The position numbers and the translations under genes are program-made. Below are positions 6,492 through 39,780 of a stretch of 64,000 bases of DNA, in pieces. Under the pieces are notes generated by a model. It did not search any database. It saw only the letters and a program-made list of their open reading frames with translations, and was not told the DNA's origin. Numbering within the stretch: the first letter of the stretch is position 1; each line of letters opens with the position of its first letter. The DNA is from Macrostomum hystrix (taxonomy: Eukaryota; Animalia; Platyhelminthes): contig CATNEN010000030.1 in the NCBI GenBank assembly GCA_950097015.1, positions 4,154,001 to 4,218,000 on the forward strand. Direction: 5' to 3'.

Positions 6492-9318
<2,827 letters not shown>

Positions 9319-24410: not shown

Positions 24411-27400
24411 ATGCGCAGCTTCTTCTCGTCGCAAGAGATGCGCGTTAGGCGAACCATTCTAGGCCAGGGTGGTCCTGCTCCCGCAGCAGCGGAAGGGGCG
24501 ACCGATCAGCAGCAGCAGCAGCCCGCTATCCTGCCCGGCGGCCTAATGGATCTGCGAGCACTACTTCACCAGCGAAGCAAGCCATCGGCTAACGAGTCCG
24601 AGCAGAGCCTTCTACTTGAAGCCTATCACCGGCGGGATGCCGACCAACTGGAGCGCCTGCTAGTGTCCGGAGATCCCTACGCGCCAGTTCTGTCCGGCCG
24701 GACGATTGCCGACCTGGCCGCCGCAGAGGAGCAGCTGTGGGCTTTGGACCGCCTCGAGCGGGTCAAGTGAGTAAATACTAAATCGTCGCGCTAAACTGTC
24801 AAATCTATTTTCTGGTCACGAAACTCTTAAGGAGGATATTGGGGGTGAGTGGCAGAGCGGTCTAACGCGTTTGTGTCTCGCACCAAGGTCCCTGAGCTCG
24901 ATTCCGCAGCGAGGCCACATTCATTTCGTGCGCAGCCGCAGAGAAAAGGCTTGGGGGCTTGTCGTGCAATTTACGCCCTTGAGGGCCAACCTCAAAGGCA
25001 CAGTGAGAGTGTACACTGCCTGACGATGAGAAAGTCACGGCAGATGTACACACCAGTCACCTGTGCAAGCGTGTGCGCGCGTACAGTATCTGTGTGCGTG
25101 TGTGTTCAGGATTCAGCGAAATGGGCAAAATTGCCGCTGGCTGCGGGTCTAGCTCGTAGTGACACCAAATGATGTGCAATTGCCCGCAGCCCTCCTTCAA
25201 TTATTATAATTATTCAAGGAGGATACTATTAACCAATCAGACGGCACTCACTGCTCAGGTTCGACTTCAACCGTCCCAACAAGCACGGCATGACGCCGCT
25301 TCACTACGCCGCCGAAGAGGGTCGAGTCAGCGCAGTGCTGAGGCTGAACGCTTTGGGCGCCAATGCCAATATTCCCATGCCCACTGGAGATTATCCGCTG
25401 CACAGGGCCTGCGCTCAGCCTAGCACCGCCCTGCTAGATGCTCTGCTGGGTGCGACGACAGTTCATGTACCTGCTGGCAAAGCCAGATCCTCAGGACAGC
25501 CACTCTCCCAGATCCTCAGGACAGCCACTCTCCCAGATCCTCAGGACAGCCACTCTCCCAGATCCTCAGGACAGCCACTCTCCCAGATCCTCAGGACAGC
25601 CACTCTCCCAGATCCTCAGGACAGCCACTCTCCCAGATCCTCAGGACAGCCACTCTCTCAGATCCTCAGGACAGCCACTCTCCCAGATCTTCAGGATAGA
25701 CAGCTACTCTACCAGTTCCTCAGGATGGACAGCCACTCTCCCAGATACTCAGGACAGCCACTCTACCAGTTCCTCAGGATGGACAGCCACTCTCCCAGAT
25801 ACTCAGGACAGCCACTCTACCAGTTCCTCAGGATGGACAGCCACTCTCCCAGATACTCAGGACAGCCACTCTACCAGTTCCTCAGGATGGACAGCCACTC
25901 TCCCAGATACTCAGGACAGCCACTCTACCAGTTCCTCAGGATGGACAGCCACTCTCCCAGATACTCAGGACAGCCACTCTACCAGTTCCTCAGGATGGAC
26001 AGCCACTCTCCCAGATCAGGAAGGACAGCCACTCTCCCAGATCCCACTCTTACGGATCCTCAGAATTGGCAGCCACTCTCCCAGATCCCAGATCAGGATG
26101 GACAGCCACTCTCCCAGATCCTCAGGATGGACAGCCACTCTCCCAAATCTTCAGGATAGACAGCTACTCTACCAGTTCCTCAGGTTCGACAGCCACTCTC
26201 CCAGATACTCAGGACAGCCACTCTACCAGTTCCTCAGGATGGACAGCCACTCTCCCAGATACTCAGGACAGCCACTCTACCAGTTCCTCAGGATGGACAG
26301 CCACTCTCCCAGATACTCAGGACAGCCACTCTACCAGTTCCTCAGGATGGACAGCCACTCTCCCAGATACTCAGGACAGCCACTCTACCAGTTCCTCAGG
26401 ATGGACAGCCACTCTCCCAGATCAGGAAGGAAAGCCACTCTCCCAGATCCCACTCTTACGGATCCTCAGAATTGGCAGCCACTCTCCCAGATCCCAGATC
26501 AGGATGGACAGCCACTCTCCCAGATCCTCAGGATGGACAGCCACTCTCCCAGATCCTCAGGATGGACAGCCACTCTCCCAGATCCTCAAGATGGAAAGCC
26601 ACTCTCTCAGGTCCTCAGGATGGACAGCCACTCTCCCAGATCCTCAGGATGGACAGCCACTCTCCCAGATCCTCAGGATGGACAGCCACTCTCCCAGATC
26701 CTCAAGATGGAAAGCCACTCTCTCAGGTCCTCAGGATGGACAGCCACTCTCCCAGATCCTCAGGATGGACAGCCACTCTCCCAGATCCTCAGGATGGAAA
26801 GCCACTCTCTCAGGTCCTCAGGATGGAGAGCCACTCTCCCAGATCCTCAGGATGGACAGCCACTCTCCCAGATCCTCAGGATGGACAGCCACTCTCCCAG
26901 ATCCTCAGGATGGACAGCCACTCTCCCAGGTCCTCATGATGGACAGCCACTCTCCCAGATCCCAGATCAGGATGGACAGCCACTCTCTCAGGTCCTCAGG
27001 ATGGACAGCCACTCTCCCAGATCCTCAGAATGGACAGCCACTCTCCCAGATCCCACTTTTACAGATCCTCAGAATTGACAGCCACTCTCCGTCATTCCTA
27101 TGAAAGAATTTCTGCCTTGAAAAACTGAACACCCAGGCGACTGCCAGGCGGACCCCACTGTTCGCGATCGTCAGGGCAACACGGCGCTCCACCGCGCCAT
27201 TCTGGAGGAGTCCGGGCCGCACATCGCCGCCCTACTGCGCAGCAGTGACGAGGCGGCCTTGAATGCCCAGGGTCAAGAGGGCCGCACTCCGCTGCACTTG
27301 GCCGTGGCCAATCAGAATCGCCTGGCCATGAAGCTGCTGCTGGAACGCGGCGCGTTTGTCGATCTGCCTGCTGACAACGGGCGCACCGCCATCGACCTGG

Positions 27401-30400
27401 TGATGCAGCTGGGCAGCCCCGTGTTGCTGGGTGACCTGTCAGCTTTCTACACTCGCGAAGTGTCTCGCACAGTGCACGCAAGCAGCTTCAAGGAGCTGCT
27501 GTCCGAGAATGGTTTCCATCAGTTTCTCGGCTTCCTGCAGGCGGTTGACAATGAGTACAGAGTCTGCCGGGTCAAGTCGCCAGAGCGATTGAGCGAAGCT
27601 GAGCAGAGGGCTCTGCTCGAGCAGCTTGTTGCGGATCAGAAGGTGCGATTTTTTCTGAGACTGGCCTTCTGGCTCAGAAATCTTGTTGGGTCAGAAGCTT
27701 TCTGGGTCAGGAAATGTTCTATCGCAGTCATTGTCTGGGTCAGGACTCGGAATTAATATTATTTGCCAAATGAGATTCGGGCTTTCACAAGTCACTGAAC
27801 TGCTGCAGTCCTGGATATGTCGTATTCCATTACAGTAAAGTTCATGCAAATTCTATTTGATTAATTTTGCCTGTACATTGCTGGCGTGCCTCATGTTTTA
27901 TTCTAACCAACGTGAATAGAATTTTTCAAACAGCCAAAGAAAGGCCGCAGTTGCACTTGTTGATTTTATCATTAGTGTAGCTATGTCCCCTGCAACTGTT
28001 AAACCTTACCAAGTGACATTTGAAATTAATTATAGTGCACTATGTACTTCTAGTTTTTTAAGAACGATTTCTCTAAAATATGAAATCGACCAACGACCAA
28101 CAGGTGGACCTGGTTGAATTCCGCGAGTTAGCCACTCGACTCGTTCGCACTGAGCTGGCCCATGCACTTGTCGGCAACGAGGAGGCCCTTCAAAAGACCG
28201 CCGCCCTAGTACTTCGCTACGTCCTGCTCCGCGAGGATGTCAACCTGCTGCGCCGCCTATCCGCCTGCGGCATTCTGTGGACCGCCGTCGCCGAGGTCAT
28301 CGAGTCCCGTCTTGACAGCGTCTACCTGCACACGCCTGAGCGAGGCGTCAGCCGATTAGTGCAGCACCTTCGACTCGGCTTCGTCCAGAGCGGACGCTTG
28401 AGGCGGGACGCGCTGGCGACTCACTACGGTGCCGAGTGCTCCGTACACATGCTGCCCGCCTATAGGCCGGACTACTGCCCGGAGATCACCTACCTGCGGC
28501 ATCCGATGGACACACTGGCCGTCTGGTCCGTGCTCACTGGCCGTTTCCAGCTCACCGAGCTGCTCATCTTGTGAGTCCAGATGGCACGATTCCCGATCCT
28601 CATTTGCGGAGACTAGGCGCTGATACCTTGAGGCTAGATTCTGATCCTATCAGTCTAGATTCTGACCCCTTCAGACTAGATTCTGATCCTATCAGACTAG
28701 ATTCTGATCCTATCAGACTAGATTCTGATCCTATCAGTCTAGATTCTGATCCTATCAGACTAGATTATGATCCTATCAGACTAGATTCTGACCCCTTCAG
28801 ACTAGATTCTGATCCTATCAGACTAGATTCTGATCCTATCAGACTAGATTCTGGTCCTATCAGACTAGATTCTGATCCTATCAGACAAGATTATGATCCT
28901 ATCAGACTAGATTATGATCCTATCAGACTAGATTCTGACCCCTTCAGACTAGATTATGATCCTATCAGACTAGATTCTGATCCTATCAGACTAGATTATG
29001 ATCCTATCAGACTAGATTATGATCCTATCAGACTAGATTCTGGTCCTATCAGACAAGATTATGATCCTATCAGACTAGATTATGATCCTATCAGACTAGA
29101 TTCTGACCCCTTCAGACTAGATTATGATCCTATCAGACTAGATTCTGACCCCTTCAGACTAGATTATGATCCTATCAGACTAGATTCTGACCCCTTCAGA
29201 CTACGGTACCCGGTAGATTCTGATCCTATCAGACTAGATTCTAATAATTTAAGACCAGATTCTAATCATTTAAGACCAGATTCTAATCATTTAAGACCAG
29301 ATTCTGATCCTATCAGACTAGATTCTGATCCTATCAGACTAGATTCTGATCCTATCAGACTAGATTCTAATAATTTAAGACCAGATTCTAATCATTTTAA
29401 GACCAGATTCTGATCCTATCAGACTAGATTCTGATCCCATGAGACTAGATTCCTATCTCACAAGACCAGATGGTAGATCCCAGTAGACTTATGCATTCCA
29501 TCTAATGTTATGAATTATGATATTCTGAGGTCTTGTCAGATACCCTCTCGTCACAAAAGTACATTCCCCGACCTGACGGTCAGGCAGGACCAGTTCGACA
29601 TCATCCCGCTCTCGCTGTTCTGCGCCGGGCTGCTCCGCAGCATGCTGTCCAATCCGGACCTGACGCTGGACGCCGAGGAGATCGAAGCGCTGGCCTCCCG
29701 CTGCGAATCCATCGCGCAGGAGACTGTGGAACGGGTGTACACTCTGGACACCTCCTACTGCAAGCAGGTCTGATATTCACATTTAGGCAATGAGAAATCG
29801 AGAGATCGAAGCTGTGTGGAAAGTGGGATTTAGAGATATCGGCTGAGACTCAGAGGTACTGGCTTGAGATTGGGAGAATTCAGGGCGTGATTTAGCTAGA
29901 CATATAAAGAATGTGATTGACGGATTGATGGATTTAATAGAGATTGAAAGATTTTGTTTGAGATTAAATCGTACAAGGTGAGATGCAGGATGATTGACTG
30001 AGATTTGAGGGATGCAGGTGGTTAAGAGAATGAGAGATTTGAGGGATGCAGGTGGTTAAGAGAATGAGAGATTTGAGGGATGCAGGTGGTTAAGAGAATG
30101 AGAGATTTGAGGGATGCAGGTGGTTAAGAGAATGAGAGAGTTGAGGGATGCAGGTGGTTAAGAGAATGAGAGAGTTGAGGGATGCAGGTGGTTAAGAGAA
30201 AGAGAGTTGAGGGATGCAGGTGGTTAAGAGAATGAGAGAGTTGAGGGATGCAGGTGGTTAAGAGAATGAGAGAGTTGAGGGATGCAGGTGGTTAAGAGAA
30301 TGAGAGAGTTGAGGGATGCAGGTGGTTAAGAGAATGAGAGAGTTGAGGGATGCAGGTGGTTAAGAGAATGAGAGAGTTGAGGGATGCAGGTGGTTAAGAG

Positions 30401-33400
30401 AATGAGAGTTGAGGGATGCAGGTGGTTAAGAGAATGAGAGTTGAGGGATGCAAGACTAGAGCTGGCGAATCCGCCACCCGCGCCGCCAGGTGACAGTGGA
30501 CTACTTGCTGATGCCGCAGCCGACCTACGGCGAAGCCTCCTGCATTGAGCTGGCGGCCAACAACCAGTCCGCCAAGTTTCTACAGACTGCGGCCGGCCAG
30601 ACAGCGCTAGACAAAAAGTGGTATGGCTGCTTGCTGAACATCAGGCCCAGCCTGCGCGAGGCCGTGATCTGGCTGGGCATGGTGCCTGGCAACCTGCTGG
30701 TGCCCATGCTGCTAGTTTACTTTGACGAGCAGCGAACTCTGGAGGAGCGGCGACATCGCGGCGGTCCGATGGACTCCGGCGGAGGTGGCGGCGGAGGCAC
30801 CCGCGGAGGCGACGAGACTTGCGAATTCCTGGTGACCGCCAAGCGAGCCGAATGCGAAGCCGCTGACAAGGCATTGAACTCGGAGGCCGAGGTGCAGTAT
30901 GCGTCCGGGAAGAAATCCTCCGCTGAGTCTGCCAAGGTCTGTGCGGGCCTGGGTGGCCTTCTCAAGGGTAGCTGCTCAGGCTAGACGTGACCGATTTTGT
31001 TTTTCCGACATTCAAATACTTCATGATATTCTGGCTAGAAATAATCCTCTCGCCTGAGGCTTAGTAGCCAACAATCCCTTCAGGTTTTCAGGCTTAGTAG
31101 CCAACAATCCCTTCAGGTTTTCAGGCTTAGTAGCCAACAATCCCTTCAGGTTTTCAGGCTTAGTAGCCAACAATCCCTTCAGGTTTTCAGGCTTAGTAGC
31201 CAACAATCCCTTCAGGTTTTCAGGCTTAGTAGCCAACAATCCCTTCAGGTTTTCAGGCTTAGTAGCCAACAATCCCTTCAGGTTTTCAGGCTTAGTAGCC
31301 AACAATCCCTTCAGGTTTTCAGGCTTAGTAGGTCCAACAATCCCTTCAGGTTTTCAGGCTTAGTAGCCAACAATCCCTTCAGGTTTTCAGGCTTAGTAGC
31401 CAACAATCCCTTCAGGCTTTCAGGCTAGTAACTATTCCCTCAAGGTACTCAAGCTAGTAGGTAATGACCTCCTAGCTAAACGACTCAGTTACTCAGCTAA
31501 AGTAGTCAGGTCAGGCTCTTAAAGTCATACGACGCACCCAGATTAGCTAGGCAATAGTATAACTGTACTCAGATGTGCACCATCTGTTGCCAACCCCGCG
31601 CAGGCCTGGGCGGGCGACGCTGCCGACCCACCCGAGGAGCGGCGCAGCCTCCTAGGCGGCTCGGGCGCCAGTCTGTCAGCCTCGGAGCGTCGCCAGCGGA
31701 GCCATCCGCATCTGCGCCGCCTGCGCCAGTTCTTCCGCCTGCTGTACGGCTTCTACAACATTCCGGCCGTGAAGTTCCGCTATCACGCTCTGGCTCACGC
31801 CAGTCTGCTCATGTTCCTGTCCTACGTGCTGGTCATCGACTTTGAGTACAGCATCAACACCGCTGAGGCAGTGGCCTACTGCATCATCTGCGGCTACCTC
31901 ATCGAGGAGGTTGGCGAGCTCATGCACTGCTCAATGTACGCCAGAATTGGGGATTATTTTCGCAGCAAATGGAATTATATTGACCTCGCCGCGCTGACCA
32001 CTGCTGTGATTGGCTTCTTCCTGCGAATGGGAAAAATTGCCGGTCATATGGAAACAGTTGACCAGAGACTCACAATGTCCTTCGCCGATCCCGGATGGTA
32101 TTTGGCCAGGCTGTTCCTGGGTGAGCGATTCGGCGCTTTGTTATTGGGATTCTTAGGGATTTGTGGTAGGGATTCTTAGGGAATTGTGGTAGGGATTCTT
32201 AGGGAATTTTGGTAGGGATTCTTAGGGAATTGTGGTAGGGATTCTTAGGGAATTGTGGTAGGGATTCTTAGGGAATTTTGGTAGGGATTCTTAGGGAATT
32301 GTGGTAGGGATTCTTAGATATTTGTGGTAGGGATTCTTAGGGAATTGTGGTAGGGATTCTTAGATATTTGTGGTAGGGATTCTTAGGGATTTGTGGTAGG
32401 GATTCTTAGATATTTGTGGTAGGGATTCTTAGATATTTGTGGTAGGGATTCTTAGATATTTGTGGTAGGGATTCTTAGATATTTGTGGTAGGGATTCTTA
32501 GATATTTGTGGTAGGGATTCTTAGATATTTGTGGTAGGGATTCTTAGGGAATTGTGGTAGGGATTCTTAGGGAATTGTGGTAGGGATTCTTAGATATTTG
32601 TGGTAGGGATTCTTAGGGATTTGTGGTAGGGATTCTTAGATATTTGTGGTAGGGATTCTTAGATATTTGTGGTAGGGATTCTTAGATATTTGTGGTAGGG
32701 ATTCTTAGATATTTGTGGTAGGGATTCTTAGGGATTTGTGGTAGGGATTCTTAGGGAATTGTGGTAGGGATTCTTAGATATTTGTGGTAGGGATTCTTAG
32801 GGAATTGTGGTAGGGATTCTTAGGGATTTGTGGTAGGAATTCTTAGGGAATTGTGGTAGGGATTCTTAGGGATTTGTGGTAGGGATTCTTAGATATTTGT
32901 GGTAGGGATTCTTAGATATTTGTGGTAGGGATTCTTAGGGAATTGTGGTAGGGATTCTTAGGGATTTGTGGTAGGGATTCTTAGATATTTGTGGTAGGGA
33001 TTCTTAGATATTTGTGGTAGGGATTCTTAGATATTTGTGGTAGGGATTCTTAGGGATTTGTGGTAGGGATTCTTAGGGATTTCTAGTAGGAATTCTTAGG
33101 GATTTCTAGTAGGAATTCTTAGGGATTTGTGGTAGGAATTCTTAGGGATTATAGCAGGTATTCTTAGGGATTGTGGTAGGAATTCTTAGGGATTATAGTA
33201 GGGATTCTTAGGGATTGTAGTAGGTATTCTTAGGGATTGTGGTAGGTATTCTTAGGGATTGTAGTAGGTATTCTTAGGGATTGTAGTAGGTATTCTTAGG
33301 GATTGTAGTAGGTATTCTTAGGGATTGTGGTAGGTATTCTTAGGGATTGTAGTAGGTATTCTTAGGGATTGTGGTAGGGATTCTTAGGGATTGTAGTAGG

Positions 33401-35106
33401 TATTCTTAGGGATTGTAGTAGGTATTCTTAGGGATTGTAGTAGGTATTCTTAGGGATTGTAGTAGGTATTCTTAGGGATTGTGGTAGGTATTCTTAGGGA
33501 TTGTGGTAGGGATTCTTAGGGATTGTAGTAGGTATTCTTAGGGATTGTGGTAGGTATTCTTAGGGATTGTAGGGATGGATTCATAGGGATTTATGGTAGG
33601 ATTTGTGGCATGGATTTATTGGGATTCTGGTAGAGATTCTTAGGGATTTGTGGTAGAGATTCTTAGGAATTTGTGGTAGGGATTTGTGGTAGAGATTCTT
33701 AGGGATTTGCCCCAAAGCTTTTCCGTGACTAAATGGAAAATTTTCACACTCGAACTCGGGACTGTCAGGCGTCTCCTGCTCGCTGTACTGGATCCGGCTG
33801 CTCTACATCTCCACCGTGCTTGAGACAGTCGGACCCAAGCTGAAAATGATGGCCAAGATGATCACTCAGGACCTGTTCCCATTCCTATTCATTTTGTTCA
33901 TTTTCATCTTCGCCTTCGGTGTGCTGATGTACGGCCTGTTGTATCCGAATGGCTATTATGCCTGGAACCCGGAGCAGATGACTGCCCCGAACATCCTGCT
34001 CGGCATGTTCAGAATTTGCTTCTACAGCATGGTCGGCGACTACAGCCTGGACGCTGTGATGGGCGCGGACGGCTGTAATGAGATCTTGGACAAGCGGGTC
34101 ATCAACAACACCCAGGCCTGCCCGCATCATGTCGGCAGGTATTTGCTATTCAGACCCGACCAAATTTCTGCCCCTAGTGGTTAGAGCGTCGGACTAACGA
34201 CTTGAAGGTCGGGGGTTCGATTCCCGACTACACTGAAAACAATCTGTGTCCTTTAGCAAGACACTTAACTCTGCATTGCTTCAGTTCACCCAGCTGCTAA
34301 CAGTAGAACTACCACGCTATTTCAAATAGCCACTGCCTACTTCACGACAGCTCCCAATCTCTATCTATTTGCAGGGGGGCCCGGGGCACTTGTCGCACAA
34401 GCGACGGAGCGGCACGCCAGACCGGCGAACTAGGCGCTTAGCGCCCATCGCGCCGCCTCCCCTGAGCAGGCACCACAATCCTTGCCTTGCCAAACGCTAA
34501 TCTCTCCGCAGATACTTGGTGCCCTACGTAATCCTGCCGCTGTACGTGATCATCACGGAGATCCTGCTGCTGAACCTCATCATCGCCCTGTTCAGCCGCA
34601 CAGTTGAAGAAATCGACTCGCGCAGCCAGTCGCTCTGGCAGTTTGAACGGCACGACCTCATCCAGGAGTTCCAGTCGCGCTCCTCGCTGCCGCCGCCGTT
34701 CAACGCTTTGGACCTTCTACGTCGTCTAGTGGCCTACGTGGTGGGCCGGCTGCGCCCGGATCTGCGCCAGGGCGCCGATGCCGACTTCGACCAGCAGCTG
34801 GTGCTGCAGTTCCTGCTGTTCCAGGCATTCAGCCTACGAAACAACCGCGCCAGATCGCTGGCCGAGCAGCAGGACTCGGACGAGGATCGACTCTTGGCCA
34901 GGGTGGCCGAAGCGGTCCGCTGCGAGTTGCGCAAGTTCCATCAGCAGCAGCAGAAGCAGCAGCCGCCGCAGTCGCAGGTGCAGCAACAGCAGCCACAGGA
35001 GCTGCAGAAGCATGCCTTCCAGCAGCCGTCAGAGCGGCCAAGCTTGGGCACCAGCATTGCTGGCACTCCGGCCAGTGTTGACACCGGTACAGACGATACT
35101 CGCTGA
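24411..35106 (+). CDS. TRP cation channel with N-terminal ankyrin repeats and a TRPM-like MHR4/pre-S1/S1-S6/TRP region, 1210 aa, 9 exons
   Basis: Exons 24411-24766, 25259-25449, 27137-27642, 28104-28570, 29584-29767, 30490-30936, 31604-32120, 33769-34138, 34512-35106 total 3633 nt, all phases compatible. Ankyrin motifs TPLHYAA, YPLHRAC, TALHRAI, TPLHLAV. TRPM-like motifs CIELA...KKWYG, FYNIPAVKF, KWNYIDL, GPKLKMM, LLNLIIALF, WQFERHDLIQEF, LPPPFN. Confidence 0.88.
24841..25213 (+). mobile_element. SINE family B, full length with target-site duplication, in TRP intron 1
   Basis: tRNA-like head GGGGGTGAGTGGCAGAGCGG...CTCGATTCC and AT-rich tail. AAGGAGGATA flanks both sides (24829-24838 and 25216-25225). 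Confidence 0.85.
25483..27090. repeat. 29-bp-family minisatellite filling TRP intron 2
   Basis: CAGATCCTCAGGATGGACAGCCACTCTCC and derivatives; same family as 48918-51205. Confidence 0.95.
28630..29450. repeat. 21-bp minisatellite in TRP intron 4
   Basis: GATTCTGATCCTATCAGACTA repeats. Confidence 0.95.
29995..30452. repeat. 34-bp minisatellite in TRP intron 5
   Basis: GAGGGATGCAGGTGGTTAAGAGAATGAGAGATTT and variants. Confidence 0.95.
31050..31425. repeat. 33-bp minisatellite in TRP intron 6
   Basis: GGCTTAGTAGCCAACAATCCCTTCAGGTTTTCA, about 11 copies. Confidence 0.95.
32146..33710. repeat. 22-23-bp G-rich minisatellite in TRP intron 7
   Basis: GATTCTTAGGGAATTGTGGTAGG and variants; unit types change along the array. 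Confidence 0.95.
34175..34298 (+). mobile_element. SINE family A partial copy in TRP intron 8
   Basis: TAGTGGTTAGAGCGTCGGACTAACGACTTGAAGGTCGGGGGTTCGATTCCC...TGTGTCCTTTAGCAAGACACTTAAC...CACCCAGCTG matches the 8471 copy. Confidence 0.8.
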
Positions 35107-37074: not shown

Positions 37075-37200
37075 GCGTACGCAGGCACTCGCTCACACAG
37101 GTGTGTGTGTACGTCTGCCGTGACTTTCTTATTGTCAGGCAGTGTACACTTTCACTCTGCCTTGGGGGTTGACGCGTTAACCGCTCTGCCACTGACCCCC
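37075..37200 (-). mobile_element. SINE family B, internally deleted copy
   Basis: Matches the family head (AACGCGT...GGCAGAGCGG) and the GTGTACACTGCC segment in reverse. Confidence 0.7.
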
Positions 37201-37291: not shown

Positions 37292-39780
37292 TCAAGGTCT
37301 CGCACAGATCATGCTGGCAAGGCAGCGTCTGCTCGTGTCGCCATTCCGCAAGCAGGGAGTGCCTGGCATCAGCAGCAGAGTGGCCGAGTGACTGCCATTG
37401 CTGCACAGGACAGGCTGGCACAGATACTTAGTTGTCCTGGCCGGGGACAGAATCCTGGCAGCAGACGAAGAAGCCGCAGCAAAGCTCAGCTGTCGCATGT
37501 GCCGGCATTGCTCCTCGGCGGTGGTGGCCGGCCCATCAGGCAGCCACAACCGGCTGGCCGGGCTGCTGAGCCGGCGCAGGCAGGCGGCCTCCTTGGTGGC
37601 CAGGAAGGCGCGTATCTGGCGCTGAGAGTCAGCCGAATAGGCGAATAGGCGAGACAAGCGAGACATATAAGCTGGCCGTAGCTGGTCACTGTCCATGAGG
37701 TAGTTGGCCTCACTGCCAGTGTGCCGTGGCGCATCCTTGGCTCCTGAAATACCAGGCAGCGATGGTTTACCGCAGTTTTGGGGGTGAGTGGACGAGTGGT
37801 TAACGCGTTTGCCTCTCGCACCAATGTCCCCCAGCTCGATTCCGCGGCGAGGCCACTTTCATTTCGGGCGTAGCCGCGGAGAGAAGGCTTGGGGCTTGTC
37901 GTTCAATTTACGACCTTGAAAGCCAACCTCCAAGGCACAGTGAGAGTGTACACTGCCTGGCGATGAGAAAGTCAGGGCAGATGTGAGTGTGTGCCTGTGT
38001 ACGGTATCTGAGTGCATGTGTGCTCAGGAGTCAGCGAAATGGGCAGAATTGCCTCCTCGCTGACTGCAGGTCTAGTGTCACCAAATAATGTGCCATTGCC
38101 TGCAGCCCTCCTGCAATTATAATATAATACGTGATTGGTTTAGTACAAAAAATTCGAATGAGTTGGAACCCTTTAACTCGGCCAGGTAAAGCTGCTGAGG
38201 GCATAAAATGATGGGTGGAGTTAGGGGCGTTGTGTGTGTCCCAAATGTCCCATAATACCAAAGCTTCTAGGCTTTTTGTACACGGCCTCGTTCCTGACGC
38301 TCTCGTCATCTTGGAAGGCCACGCGGAGCATCCCCGAGTCCTGACGATCGCCAGAACGTTGGATTTGTTGAATACTAAAATAAAAGAAACTATTTACCTT
38401 CTTGATTGTGTTTCTTGTTCTTCTACCTGCTCCGAACTCTTTGATCCAAAATTTTGCACTGGTTTGTCTTCCTCCCAAATCACTCCAGTTCAACTACGAG
38501 TATATAGCTCGTATATCAGCTTTTGCCAGGGAATATAAAGAGTAAAGTGGCGAGCATTACTGTGACGCTGTGACGCTATAAACTCTATTATTCCTCCTAC
38601 TGCACATTGCCGCTTGTCAGGCGTTCGTCAATTTATCGGGTCGAAAAGAAGGTAATTTTGTCTACTCAACCTAAATGCACTTACCGAGCACGTGGCCAAG
38701 CTCGTGAGCAATGAGCCGAGCGGTGGCAGCCGGGTACAGGTCGGTGACCACAGAGCGAGAGCATGAATGGCAGGCCGAGCCCATAAACGACAGGCCAATG
38801 AGTCTGGCTCCTTTTGGATGGGGCCCGGGTGGTGGCAGAAGAGTCCGATCCCTGACGATCAGCATGTGGTGATCATAGTTGTTGTCGCCGCCGCCGCCGC
38901 AGATGACGCTGCTGTTGCTCCAGTCGGCCTGAGCCTCCATGCTGAGCAGCAGATGCAGCGCTGGGACTTTGGCGCCAAACTGCCTCAGGTAGGCGATCCC
39001 GGGAGCCTTCAGACTGGCGTAAACTCGTGAGCAGCCGAGCACCCAGCGGACCTGAACTCCGACGCTCGACAAGACTCGGTTTACCACAGCAAAGATTCCG
39101 CCAAAATAATTCGTTGCAGCAGTGTGGGCGTCAGCTAAGGAACCACTGGATGCTACAAAGTGACGCAACACGGACGGATCAAGATCTAGACGGAGCTCCA
39201 GCACCGCAGATGCCGACGACACTGCTGCCCCACGGGCGGATTTCGCAGTTGGAGCCGTCAGACTGCTGGCTTCTTGAAATTCTGGCGTATTATCCAGGCG
39301 CTCTGTATCCAATTGGCAGGCGAAGCCGCCGGTGCCAGCTCCGTGCACAGCCAAGCGTACTACCTGCTGGGCGTCACTTCCGTTAGTTCCGATTAGGTTA
39401 ACAAAGCCAGCCAGCAGATCCGGTCCGGTCGTCTGCTTAGCGACTGTTGCTGTCGCTATCGTGTGCTTGCCTCGCAGCAGCTTGTACCTAGTGGTTCTCA
39501 CCTTGGCACCGTTCACCACATCGGCTGTAAAGGAGGCAGACTGGCGTTGAAGTAGCATGCGCTGCGTATTGAAGCCAGTCGATGATTGTTGCACTCGACC
39601 AGGAGGCGTCAGTTGCAGTCGCAGTGAGTTGCCTTTTGTTTCCCAGGTGACGCGCCATGCGCTATCGTCGGAGGAAGCGCAAGTGTCTCCTGATTTCGCT
39701 GCTGCTGCAGTTGCTGCTGTTGATGGCGGAAAGATAGCTAAAATAACTTGCAGCAATGTGTGTAGATACACGCTTTTCAT
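37292..39780 (-). CDS. Secreted reprolysin (M12B)/ADAMTS-like metalloprotease, 515 aa, 2 exons
   Basis: Exon 1 39780-38685 and exon 2 37743-37292 join in phase 1, giving IAHELGHVLG|AKD. Signal-peptide-like N-terminus, GLSFMGSAC, Met-turn NYLM, FLATKEAACL, then an ADAMTS-type disintegrin-like Cys module (AEEQC...LC..VLC...PGTPC...C). Confidence 0.8.
37780..38127 (+). mobile_element. SINE family B, full length, in the metalloprotease intron
   Basis: Colinear with the 24841 copy throughout. Confidence 0.85.

Follow-up and report, generated by a model that had tools for sequence, protein, structure and literature searches.

A conserved Macrostomum gene for a small ADAMTS-like metalloprotease with aspartate in place of the third zinc-binding histidine

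Among animal ADAM-type proteases, ADAMDEC1 has to our knowledge been treated so far as the sole enzyme with an aspartate zinc ligand, and the purpose of its histidine-to-aspartate swap is debated, dampened activity and escape from TIMPs being the two proposals. In bacteria, a ligand of this kind is found in snapalysin (family M7, Streptomyces), a metzincin with the motif HExxHxxGxxD and a Met-turn, in which Asp is the third ligand. The snapalysin-type motif has been treated under 'Asp-zincins' (PMC3890501). According to PMC4885070 and PMC5174729, ADAMDEC1 is a mammalian M12B protein with the motif HEXXHXXGXXD, which is secreted, carries a short disintegrin domain and is proteolytically active. 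In particular, PMC5174729, which cites Lund et al. 2013 and 2015, presents it as the only mammalian ADAM with the His-to-Asp change, active in vitro and escaping TIMP1-3; PMC4885070 places its origin within the vertebrate ADAM7/28 group. Here we describe a gene of the flatworm Macrostomum hystrix, located in a stretch of 64,000 nucleotides (assembly GCA_950097015.1, contig CATNEN010000030.1, positions 4,154,001 to 4,218,000 of the forward strand; hereafter the window), which encodes a small ADAMTS-like zinc protease with Asp in the place of the third zinc-binding His.

The coding sequence occupies positions 37,292-39,780 of the window on the minus strand, exactly the span outlined in a preliminary description of the locus, and its product is 515 amino acids long (365 + 1 + 149). 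Exon 1 (38,685-39,780) opens with an ATG at 39,780 and comprises 365 full codons, ending ...ARLIAHELGHVL when the minus strand is read directly, plus one base of Gly366, whose codon is split by the intron. On the donor side, the last base of this exon, a G at 38,685, is followed by GTAAGT. The intron (37,744-38,684; 941 nucleotides, GT..AG, phase 1) ends with a pyrimidine-rich tract leading to TTTCAG, with the AG at 37,745-37,744, and exon 2 (37,292-37,743) extends from 37,743 to the TGA at 37,294-37,292. Splicing joins G and GA into Gly366, followed by GCC AAG GAT, and the motif HELGHVLG-AKD is thereby read across the junction. Downstream, exon 2 encodes NYLM (Met382), YSADS (residues 401-405), CLRR (Cys420) and six further cysteines between residues 445 and 512 before the stop codon. 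When the intron sequence was read, no in-frame His codon was found 5′ of the acceptor, and therefore no alternative acceptor yields GxxH. A tandem acceptor, CAGGAG, is present in both Macrostomum species examined (37,741-37,746 of the window; 8,231-8,236 of the M. lignano locus L003); use of its second AG would remove the Gly of HExxHxxG and keep the frame.

This two-exon gene is real and conserved. In the M. hystrix genome (220 Mb, 42 contigs) it is present as a single copy, on contig C30. A word-index protein search with exon 1 over 5.8 billion clusters returned one sole close protein, M. lignano PAA53977 (E = 1.2e-96; hereafter P0001), named 'Peptidase M12B domain-containing protein', of which two near-identical M. 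lignano copies exist (P0002 and P0003). Identity to P0001 is 57% for exon 1 over 346 aligned positions (E 4e-112) and 62% for exon 2 (E 9e-62). All three M. lignano copies read HELGHVLGATD, then NYLM, and the M. lignano junction, CTTG/GTGAGT ... TTCCAG/GAGCCACAGAC, has the same intron place and phase as that of M. hystrix. Because an ankyrin-TRPM channel gene adjoins the protease gene in both species (24,411-35,106 of the window; 13,209-14,739 of L003), the M. lignano copies are orthologues in conserved synteny. As the annotation deposited for M. lignano was made from RNA-seq and transcript assemblies (PMC5730564), the junction has indirect RNA support in that species.

Nei-Gojobori counts, made exon by exon against the M. 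lignano exons, gave a proportion of synonymous differences (pS) of 0.64, which is saturated, and a proportion of nonsynonymous differences (pN) of 0.27, that is, a pN/pS of 0.41 overall. The ratio is 0.59 over the N-terminal 170 codons and 0.26 over the catalytic part of exon 1. Identity in 30-residue windows reaches its maximum of 0.8-0.87 inside the catalytic domain, around the active site, and the approximately 28 residues through HELGHVLG differ at one position (V/I) between the two species. By these substitution counts, the gene is under purifying selection and not decaying.

The zinc-binding region combines family features that are kept with others that are changed. HELGHVL (38,686-38,706), which holds His359, Glu360 and His363 at the end of the active-site helix, does not vary among the orthologues or the aligned relatives, and HExxHxxG with its catalytic Glu is intact. 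The Met-turn NYLM (37,694-37,705) is also kept, and its Met382 (ATG at 37,696-37,694) aligns with the nearly invariant Met of 33 relatives. In the place of the third-ligand sequence GxxHD, in contrast, the window has GAKD and M. lignano has GATD, whereas the 36 distant relatives with a readable motif all show HExxHxxGxxH followed by D (E in one). Specifically, the segment Ala367-Lys368-Asp369 (37,733-37,741) sets Asp369 (GAT, 37,735-37,733) at the third zinc-ligand position, His363 + 6. The two alignment methods arrange this residue differently: in MAFFT the Macrostomum Asp pairs with the Asp of 'HD' and the His column is left as a one-residue gap, and HMMER sets it, ungapped, beneath the third His of ADAMTS-1. 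Either alignment leaves the Asp six residues past the second His, at the distance of the third ligand. Moreover, the family sequence FSxCS is replaced by YSADS (37,625-37,639). Cys337 and Cys420, the two cysteines that would form the conserved family disulfide between the strand before the active-site helix and the C-terminal helix, are both present (C310 and C393 in P0001), and the alignment column of C310 consists almost entirely of Cys.

These results bear out the core of the preliminary description, which had proposed the spliced order HELGHVLG/AKD, NYLM, YSADS, Cys module and stop, with Asp at the third-ligand position (HExxHxxGxxD) and YSADS for FSxCS: the order is read directly in the window, the junction recurs in M. 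lignano and the Asp is kept in the orthologues. The same description had envisaged two ways in which it could fail. A different acceptor giving GxxH finds no in-frame His codon on which to draw, and a decaying copy among orthologues with His is at odds with both the GATD of the three M. lignano copies and the overall pN/pS.

As regards family placement, Pfam and sequence searches were run with the window exons separately and with the natural full-length orthologue P0001 as a proxy for the whole protein. Taken apart, the window exons gave sub-threshold matches only, namely Reprolysin_3 with 14.6 bits (E 0.05) and a weak match to ADAMTS_CR_2 (E 0.036, 14.9 bits against a cut-off of 27.3). P0001 instead exceeds the Pfam Reprolysin (PF01421) cut-off, with 23.3 versus 20.8 bits, and only M12B families matched it, the snapalysin M7 family giving no match. 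Its best sequence matches among solved structures are ADAMTS-1 (E 9e-5) and ADAMTS-5, followed by ADAM33 and adamalysin II. An exhaustive HMMER search over 1.84 billion representatives yielded no more than 38 proteins with E <= 1e-3, headed by one at 1.2e-8. This marks the branch as strongly diverged and restricted to its lineage. The relatives come from molluscs, nematodes and ticks and bear names such as 'ADAM family mig-17', 'ADAMTS 19-like' and 'antarease-like', and the look-alikes found with a language model belong to the same kinds of cluster. Among 34 aligned rows (29 relatives and five Macrostomum rows), ADAMTS_CR_2 is found in 27 and TSP_1 in 2. Judged from these domain matches, the ADAMTS-like layout without TSP1 repeats is an ordinary one among the invertebrate relatives. 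In keeping with that layout, neither TSP_1 nor PLAC (PF08686) gave a match in the window exons or in P0001, and the stop directly follows the disintegrin-like (D) module, both in the window and in each of the three M. lignano copies. Among ADAMTS-type proteases, the protein falls in the TSP1-less, MIG-17-like/antarease-like branch.

The structural comparison was based on an AlphaFold2 model of P0001 with a mean predicted local distance difference test score (pLDDT) of 64 and values of 80-95 in the catalytic core. The adamalysin fold is evident, as the model matches more than 40 catalytic domains of ADAM, ADAMTS and snake-venom metalloproteases, with Z 19-24 and root-mean-square deviations (rmsd) of 2.4-3.8. 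The ADAM and snake-venom enzymes align to the catalytic domain of the model only, residues 170 to about 408; through residues 170-489, only the chains of ADAMTS-1, -4 and -5 that comprise metalloprotease and D module align (Z 24.1, 23.4 and 22.7 for ADAMTS-4, -1 and -5, respectively). Fold and sequence matches therefore identify an M12B enzyme that carries a D module of the ADAMTS type and no TSP1 repeat. A chance resemblance is ruled out by the orthologue E value of 1.2e-96, the Reprolysin score of P0001 and the Z of 24 to ADAMTS-4. On the M. hystrix protein, the exon-1 part of the M12B catalytic domain, delimited with the help of the orthologue model, covers approximately residues 191-365 (38,686-39,210) and includes Cys337. 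The ADAMTS-type D module, placed by the weak ADAMTS_CR_2 match and by the model, covers approximately residues 425-515 (37,295-37,567) and has six cysteines (445, 474, 479, 496, 506 and 512) versus eight in the relatives.

At the N-terminus, residues 1 to about 26 (39,703-39,780; approximate boundary) are probably a signal peptide, with a hydrophobic LLQVILAIF core, and P0001 likewise starts with a hydrophobic N-terminus. A pro-like region of approximately residues 27-190 (39,211-39,702), predicted to be beta-rich, follows. This is the fastest-evolving part of the gene and has no relatives outside Macrostomum: in the HMMER search no distant relative aligns before residue 175, and the N-terminal 170 residues gave no Pfam propeptide match in the window exons or in P0001, for which PF01562 is absent even at E 10. 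Modelled alone, the region reaches a pLDDT of 56 and background fold matches only (Z <= 8.2), values too poor to classify its fold. Cys155 (GFACQL; 39,316-39,318), which is kept in all orthologues and sits about 37 residues before the catalytic domain, is a candidate cysteine-switch residue. The further statements of the preliminary description hold as well: an ADAMTS-like metalloprotease whose disintegrin-like Cys module is followed by the stop, without TSP1, agrees with the ADAMTS-4/-1/-5 structural matches; a minimal reprolysin-type (M12B) protein is what the Reprolysin match of P0001 and the Asp at the third-ligand position indicate, with secretion suggested by the N-terminus; and the N-terminal region does differ from a standard ADAMTS prodomain, in the missing PF01562 match and in a linker without an RxxR site.

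One premise of that description has to be abandoned, namely that animal reprolysins use His and that an Asp third ligand is known from bacterial metzincins, as the published mammalian ADAMDEC1 motif is of the Asp type. Like the flatworm protein, ADAMDEC1 has the Asp ligand in a soluble protein, in which a pro region and a metalloprotease domain precede a short C-terminal Cys module and transmembrane and EGF parts are absent. The two differ in that ADAMDEC1 belongs to the ADAM branch (ADAM7/28 cluster) and has a truncated ADAM-type disintegrin domain, whereas in the flatworm protein both the D module and the nearest relatives are of the ADAMTS type; moreover, the flatworm motif is without the residue after the ligand, in a comparison based on the published description of ADAMDEC1. 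Snapalysin is a small bacterial enzyme of another family and has the motif alone in common with the flatworm protein. The MIG-17-like proteins without TSP1 resemble it in their secreted pro-metalloprotease-D layout with an ADAMTS_CR_2-type module and are its best distant matches (E 1e-8 to 1e-4), but in them HExxHxxGxxHD and the neighbouring pair of cysteines are retained, and their identity to the flatworm protein is only 20-35%. C. elegans MIG-17 carries a C-terminal PLAC domain, and in this respect the flatworm protein, with no PLAC match and a stop directly after the D module, differs from it. The antarease-like and tick salivary reprolysins are similar in size (about 480-540 amino acids) and composition (Reprolysin and ADAMTS_CR_2, without TSP1), and are the top language-model look-alikes as well as HMMER matches; they are, however, arthropod venom or saliva enzymes with the canonical His ligand, and no orthology is implied. 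Finally, ADAMTS-1, -4 and -5 (2jih, 2rjp, 2rjq) provide the best structural match through metalloprotease and D module (255-265 residues, rmsd 2.8-3.4), but true ADAMTS proteases have thrombospondin repeats, Cys-rich and spacer domains, the third His, approximately four catalytic-domain disulfides, eight cysteines in the D module and furin-processed prodomains.

The M. hystrix genome itself holds at least 42 reprolysin-type exon matches, and 20 of these loci were fetched and read for the zinc motif. HExxHxxGxxH was found in the fetched frame at 14 of them and one further locus has GLPHD just past an intron; the remaining five, on contigs C14 and C39, are dead and have lost the third His as well (TQNLAYNLGVDYD or TRNLAYNLGVDYD). 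A locus on C38 keeps the third His (TQKLAYNLGVKHD) but has lost the H, E and H of HExxH, bringing the dead loci to six. None of the 20 loci combines an intact HExxHxxG motif with Asp in the ligand position, and thus the search for paralogues keeping the Asp, proposed as a check in the preliminary description, returned none in this sample, in which 15 loci keep His. The degenerate active sites belong to tandem ADAM-like paralogues (G000:C14:788600-883100, C39:17538200 and C38:16446850; loci L010, L011, L013, L015, L016 and L021), which show TQNLAYNLGVDYD where HExxHxxGxxHD is expected, yet retain the region of the Met-turn, the pattern of cysteines and the start of the disintegrin domain. A separate cluster of at least ten reprolysin exon matches (G000:C1:12123400-12891900) is of the short MIG-17-like type with the canonical HELGHNLGSxHD, and may represent the closest relatives of the Asp-type gene among the paralogues with a canonical motif. 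An intron position in common with a canonical paralogue on contig C10 was considered and dropped, as the intron of that paralogue lies one or two codons off.

Repeats surround and interrupt the locus. Within the intron, at about positions 37,746-38,200, lies a high-copy dispersed repeat, with a word depth of thousands in a public run versus about 3 on the flanking exons; a 61-nucleotide arm of this repeat recurs in inverted orientation at 37,111-37,171, just beyond the 3′ end of the gene, with 87% complementarity. Just downstream of the stop codon, the segment 36,400-37,213 comprises at least 13 head-to-tail copies of a 43-nucleotide unit, of which distant copies are 87-95% alike. The intron of the M. 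lignano orthologue (7,016-8,233 of L003) is in turn a tandem repeat, in frame and stop-free (...DRDADTESVRRV...). As a result, the whole M. lignano gene reads as one open reading frame of 912 amino acids, a trap for annotation based on open reading frames.

We lean towards the interpretation that the gene encodes a lineage-specific, Asp-liganded M12B protease that would be active like ADAMDEC1 and would have arisen independently of it. In this scheme, the signal peptide would direct the protein to secretion, and the N-terminal region, about 165 residues of fast-evolving, beta-rich sequence with a conserved Cys and a K-S-A-[KR] site in the linker, might act as a pro-segment that confers latency. 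The zinc ion would have His359, His363 and Asp369 as its ligands, Glu360 would serve as general base and Met382 would lie beneath the site, and the D module would be packed on the catalytic domain as in ADAMTS-1, -4 and -5. By analogy with ADAMDEC1, the Asp may entail lower or narrower activity than that of the His-type relatives. As to its origin, the simplest and most likely event would be loss of the His codon from the family 'HD' pair, leaving the neighbouring Asp at ligand spacing. The protein is thus most likely a functional look-alike of ADAMDEC1 on an ADAMTS/MIG-17-like scaffold, to be explained by convergence. A TIMP-escape role for it finds no support here: TIMP (PF00965) gave no match in the M. 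hystrix genome but none in the control genomes either, which makes the search uninformative.

Several observations weigh against this interpretation. The zinc motif falls one residue short of that of every relative, so that the site could be distorted, and the Asp-bearing loop of the P0001 model is only moderately confident (pLDDT about 69). According to the alignment, the Cys pair beside the active site, one member of which follows the zinc motif and the other lies in FSxCS, is absent; these two residues pair in ADAMTS-1, and we read their absence as the paired loss of one disulfide. Upstream cysteines of the ADAMTS catalytic domain are apparently missing as well, a judgement made from the Cys positions against ADAMTS-1 numbering. 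The linker has no furin-type RxxR, only KSAR or KSAK. Gene structure, motif, conservation in two species, purifying selection and fold are shown directly, while secretion, zymogen latency, zinc binding and catalysis are predictions. For M. hystrix, a search for public sequencing runs returned a single one that contains the stretch, of unrecorded type; its low-depth contigs are identical to the window where they match but leave the junction uncovered, and it supplies neither expression nor junction evidence. In addition, the conservation of the Asp is known from two species only: beyond the M. lignano cluster, nothing below E 1e-8 that could help to date the Asp emerged from the HMMER search, and a literature search on Mlig020008 or on Macrostomum reprolysins found nothing specific.

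Some of these observations would also suit a pseudo-protease, in which fold and secretion are kept and catalysis is abolished by the His-to-Asp change, the short loop and the lost disulfides, leaving a module for extracellular-matrix binding or a decoy. The absent third His, the lost disulfide next to the active site and the want of both a canonical propeptide and a furin site are in its favour, together with a loop from motif to Met-turn of 13 residues, at the short end compared with 14-18 in the family, and with the existence of tandem arrays of dead ADAMs in the same genome. Those dead paralogues, however, exemplify relaxed constraint and have fully degenerate active sites, whereas the Asp-type gene keeps H, E, H, G and M, and the helix block up to HELGHVLG varies at its single V/I position despite saturated synonymous sites. 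Furthermore, an Asp third ligand supports catalysis in ADAMDEC1 (PMC4885070, PMC5174729), as it does in snapalysin. We consequently regard loss of catalysis as unlikely, although deserving of serious consideration. Far less credit can be given to a gene-model artefact, in which another acceptor or exon would restore GxxH or the gene would be a decaying pseudogene. The tandem CAGGAG acceptor makes a 3-nucleotide alternative conceivable and the public M. hystrix run does not span the junction, but the downstream AG deletes only the Gly, no in-frame His codon precedes the acceptor, and the RNA-based M. lignano models show the same junction in three copies. In addition, both exon frames are intact in a single-copy, syntenic gene with the constrained pN/pS given above, and the artefact is thereby largely refuted. 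Direct kinship with vertebrate ADAMDEC1, with the Asp due to common ancestry, could be suggested by the common HExxHxxGxxD, secreted layout and short C-terminal Cys module; it is highly improbable, as the nearest relatives in sequence and structure are ADAMTS-type, the match to ADAM and snake-venom structures is confined to the catalytic domain, His is kept in every intermediate relative, and ADAMDEC1 arose in the vertebrate ADAM7/28 group according to PMC4885070.

Since ADAMDEC1 already has the Asp ligand, the flatworm gene looks like an independent second case rather than a new kind of enzyme. The chances appear to us evenly balanced that flatworms evolved an active His-His-Asp M12B protease independently of mammals, on the ADAMTS/MIG-17-like branch and probably by loss of the single codon for the ligand His. 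In other respects, the gene is an ordinary member of a large and expanding flatworm reprolysin repertoire. If the independent origin of an active enzyme is true, this second case under purifying selection would constitute a natural replicate on an ADAMTS-like branch, and D-to-H and H-to-D swaps would become comparable in two unrelated scaffolds, in a genus in which M. lignano is tractable for transgenesis. The Asp ligand would then represent a recurrent, selected solution, providing tuned or inhibitor-evading activity, and not an oddity of ADAMDEC1.

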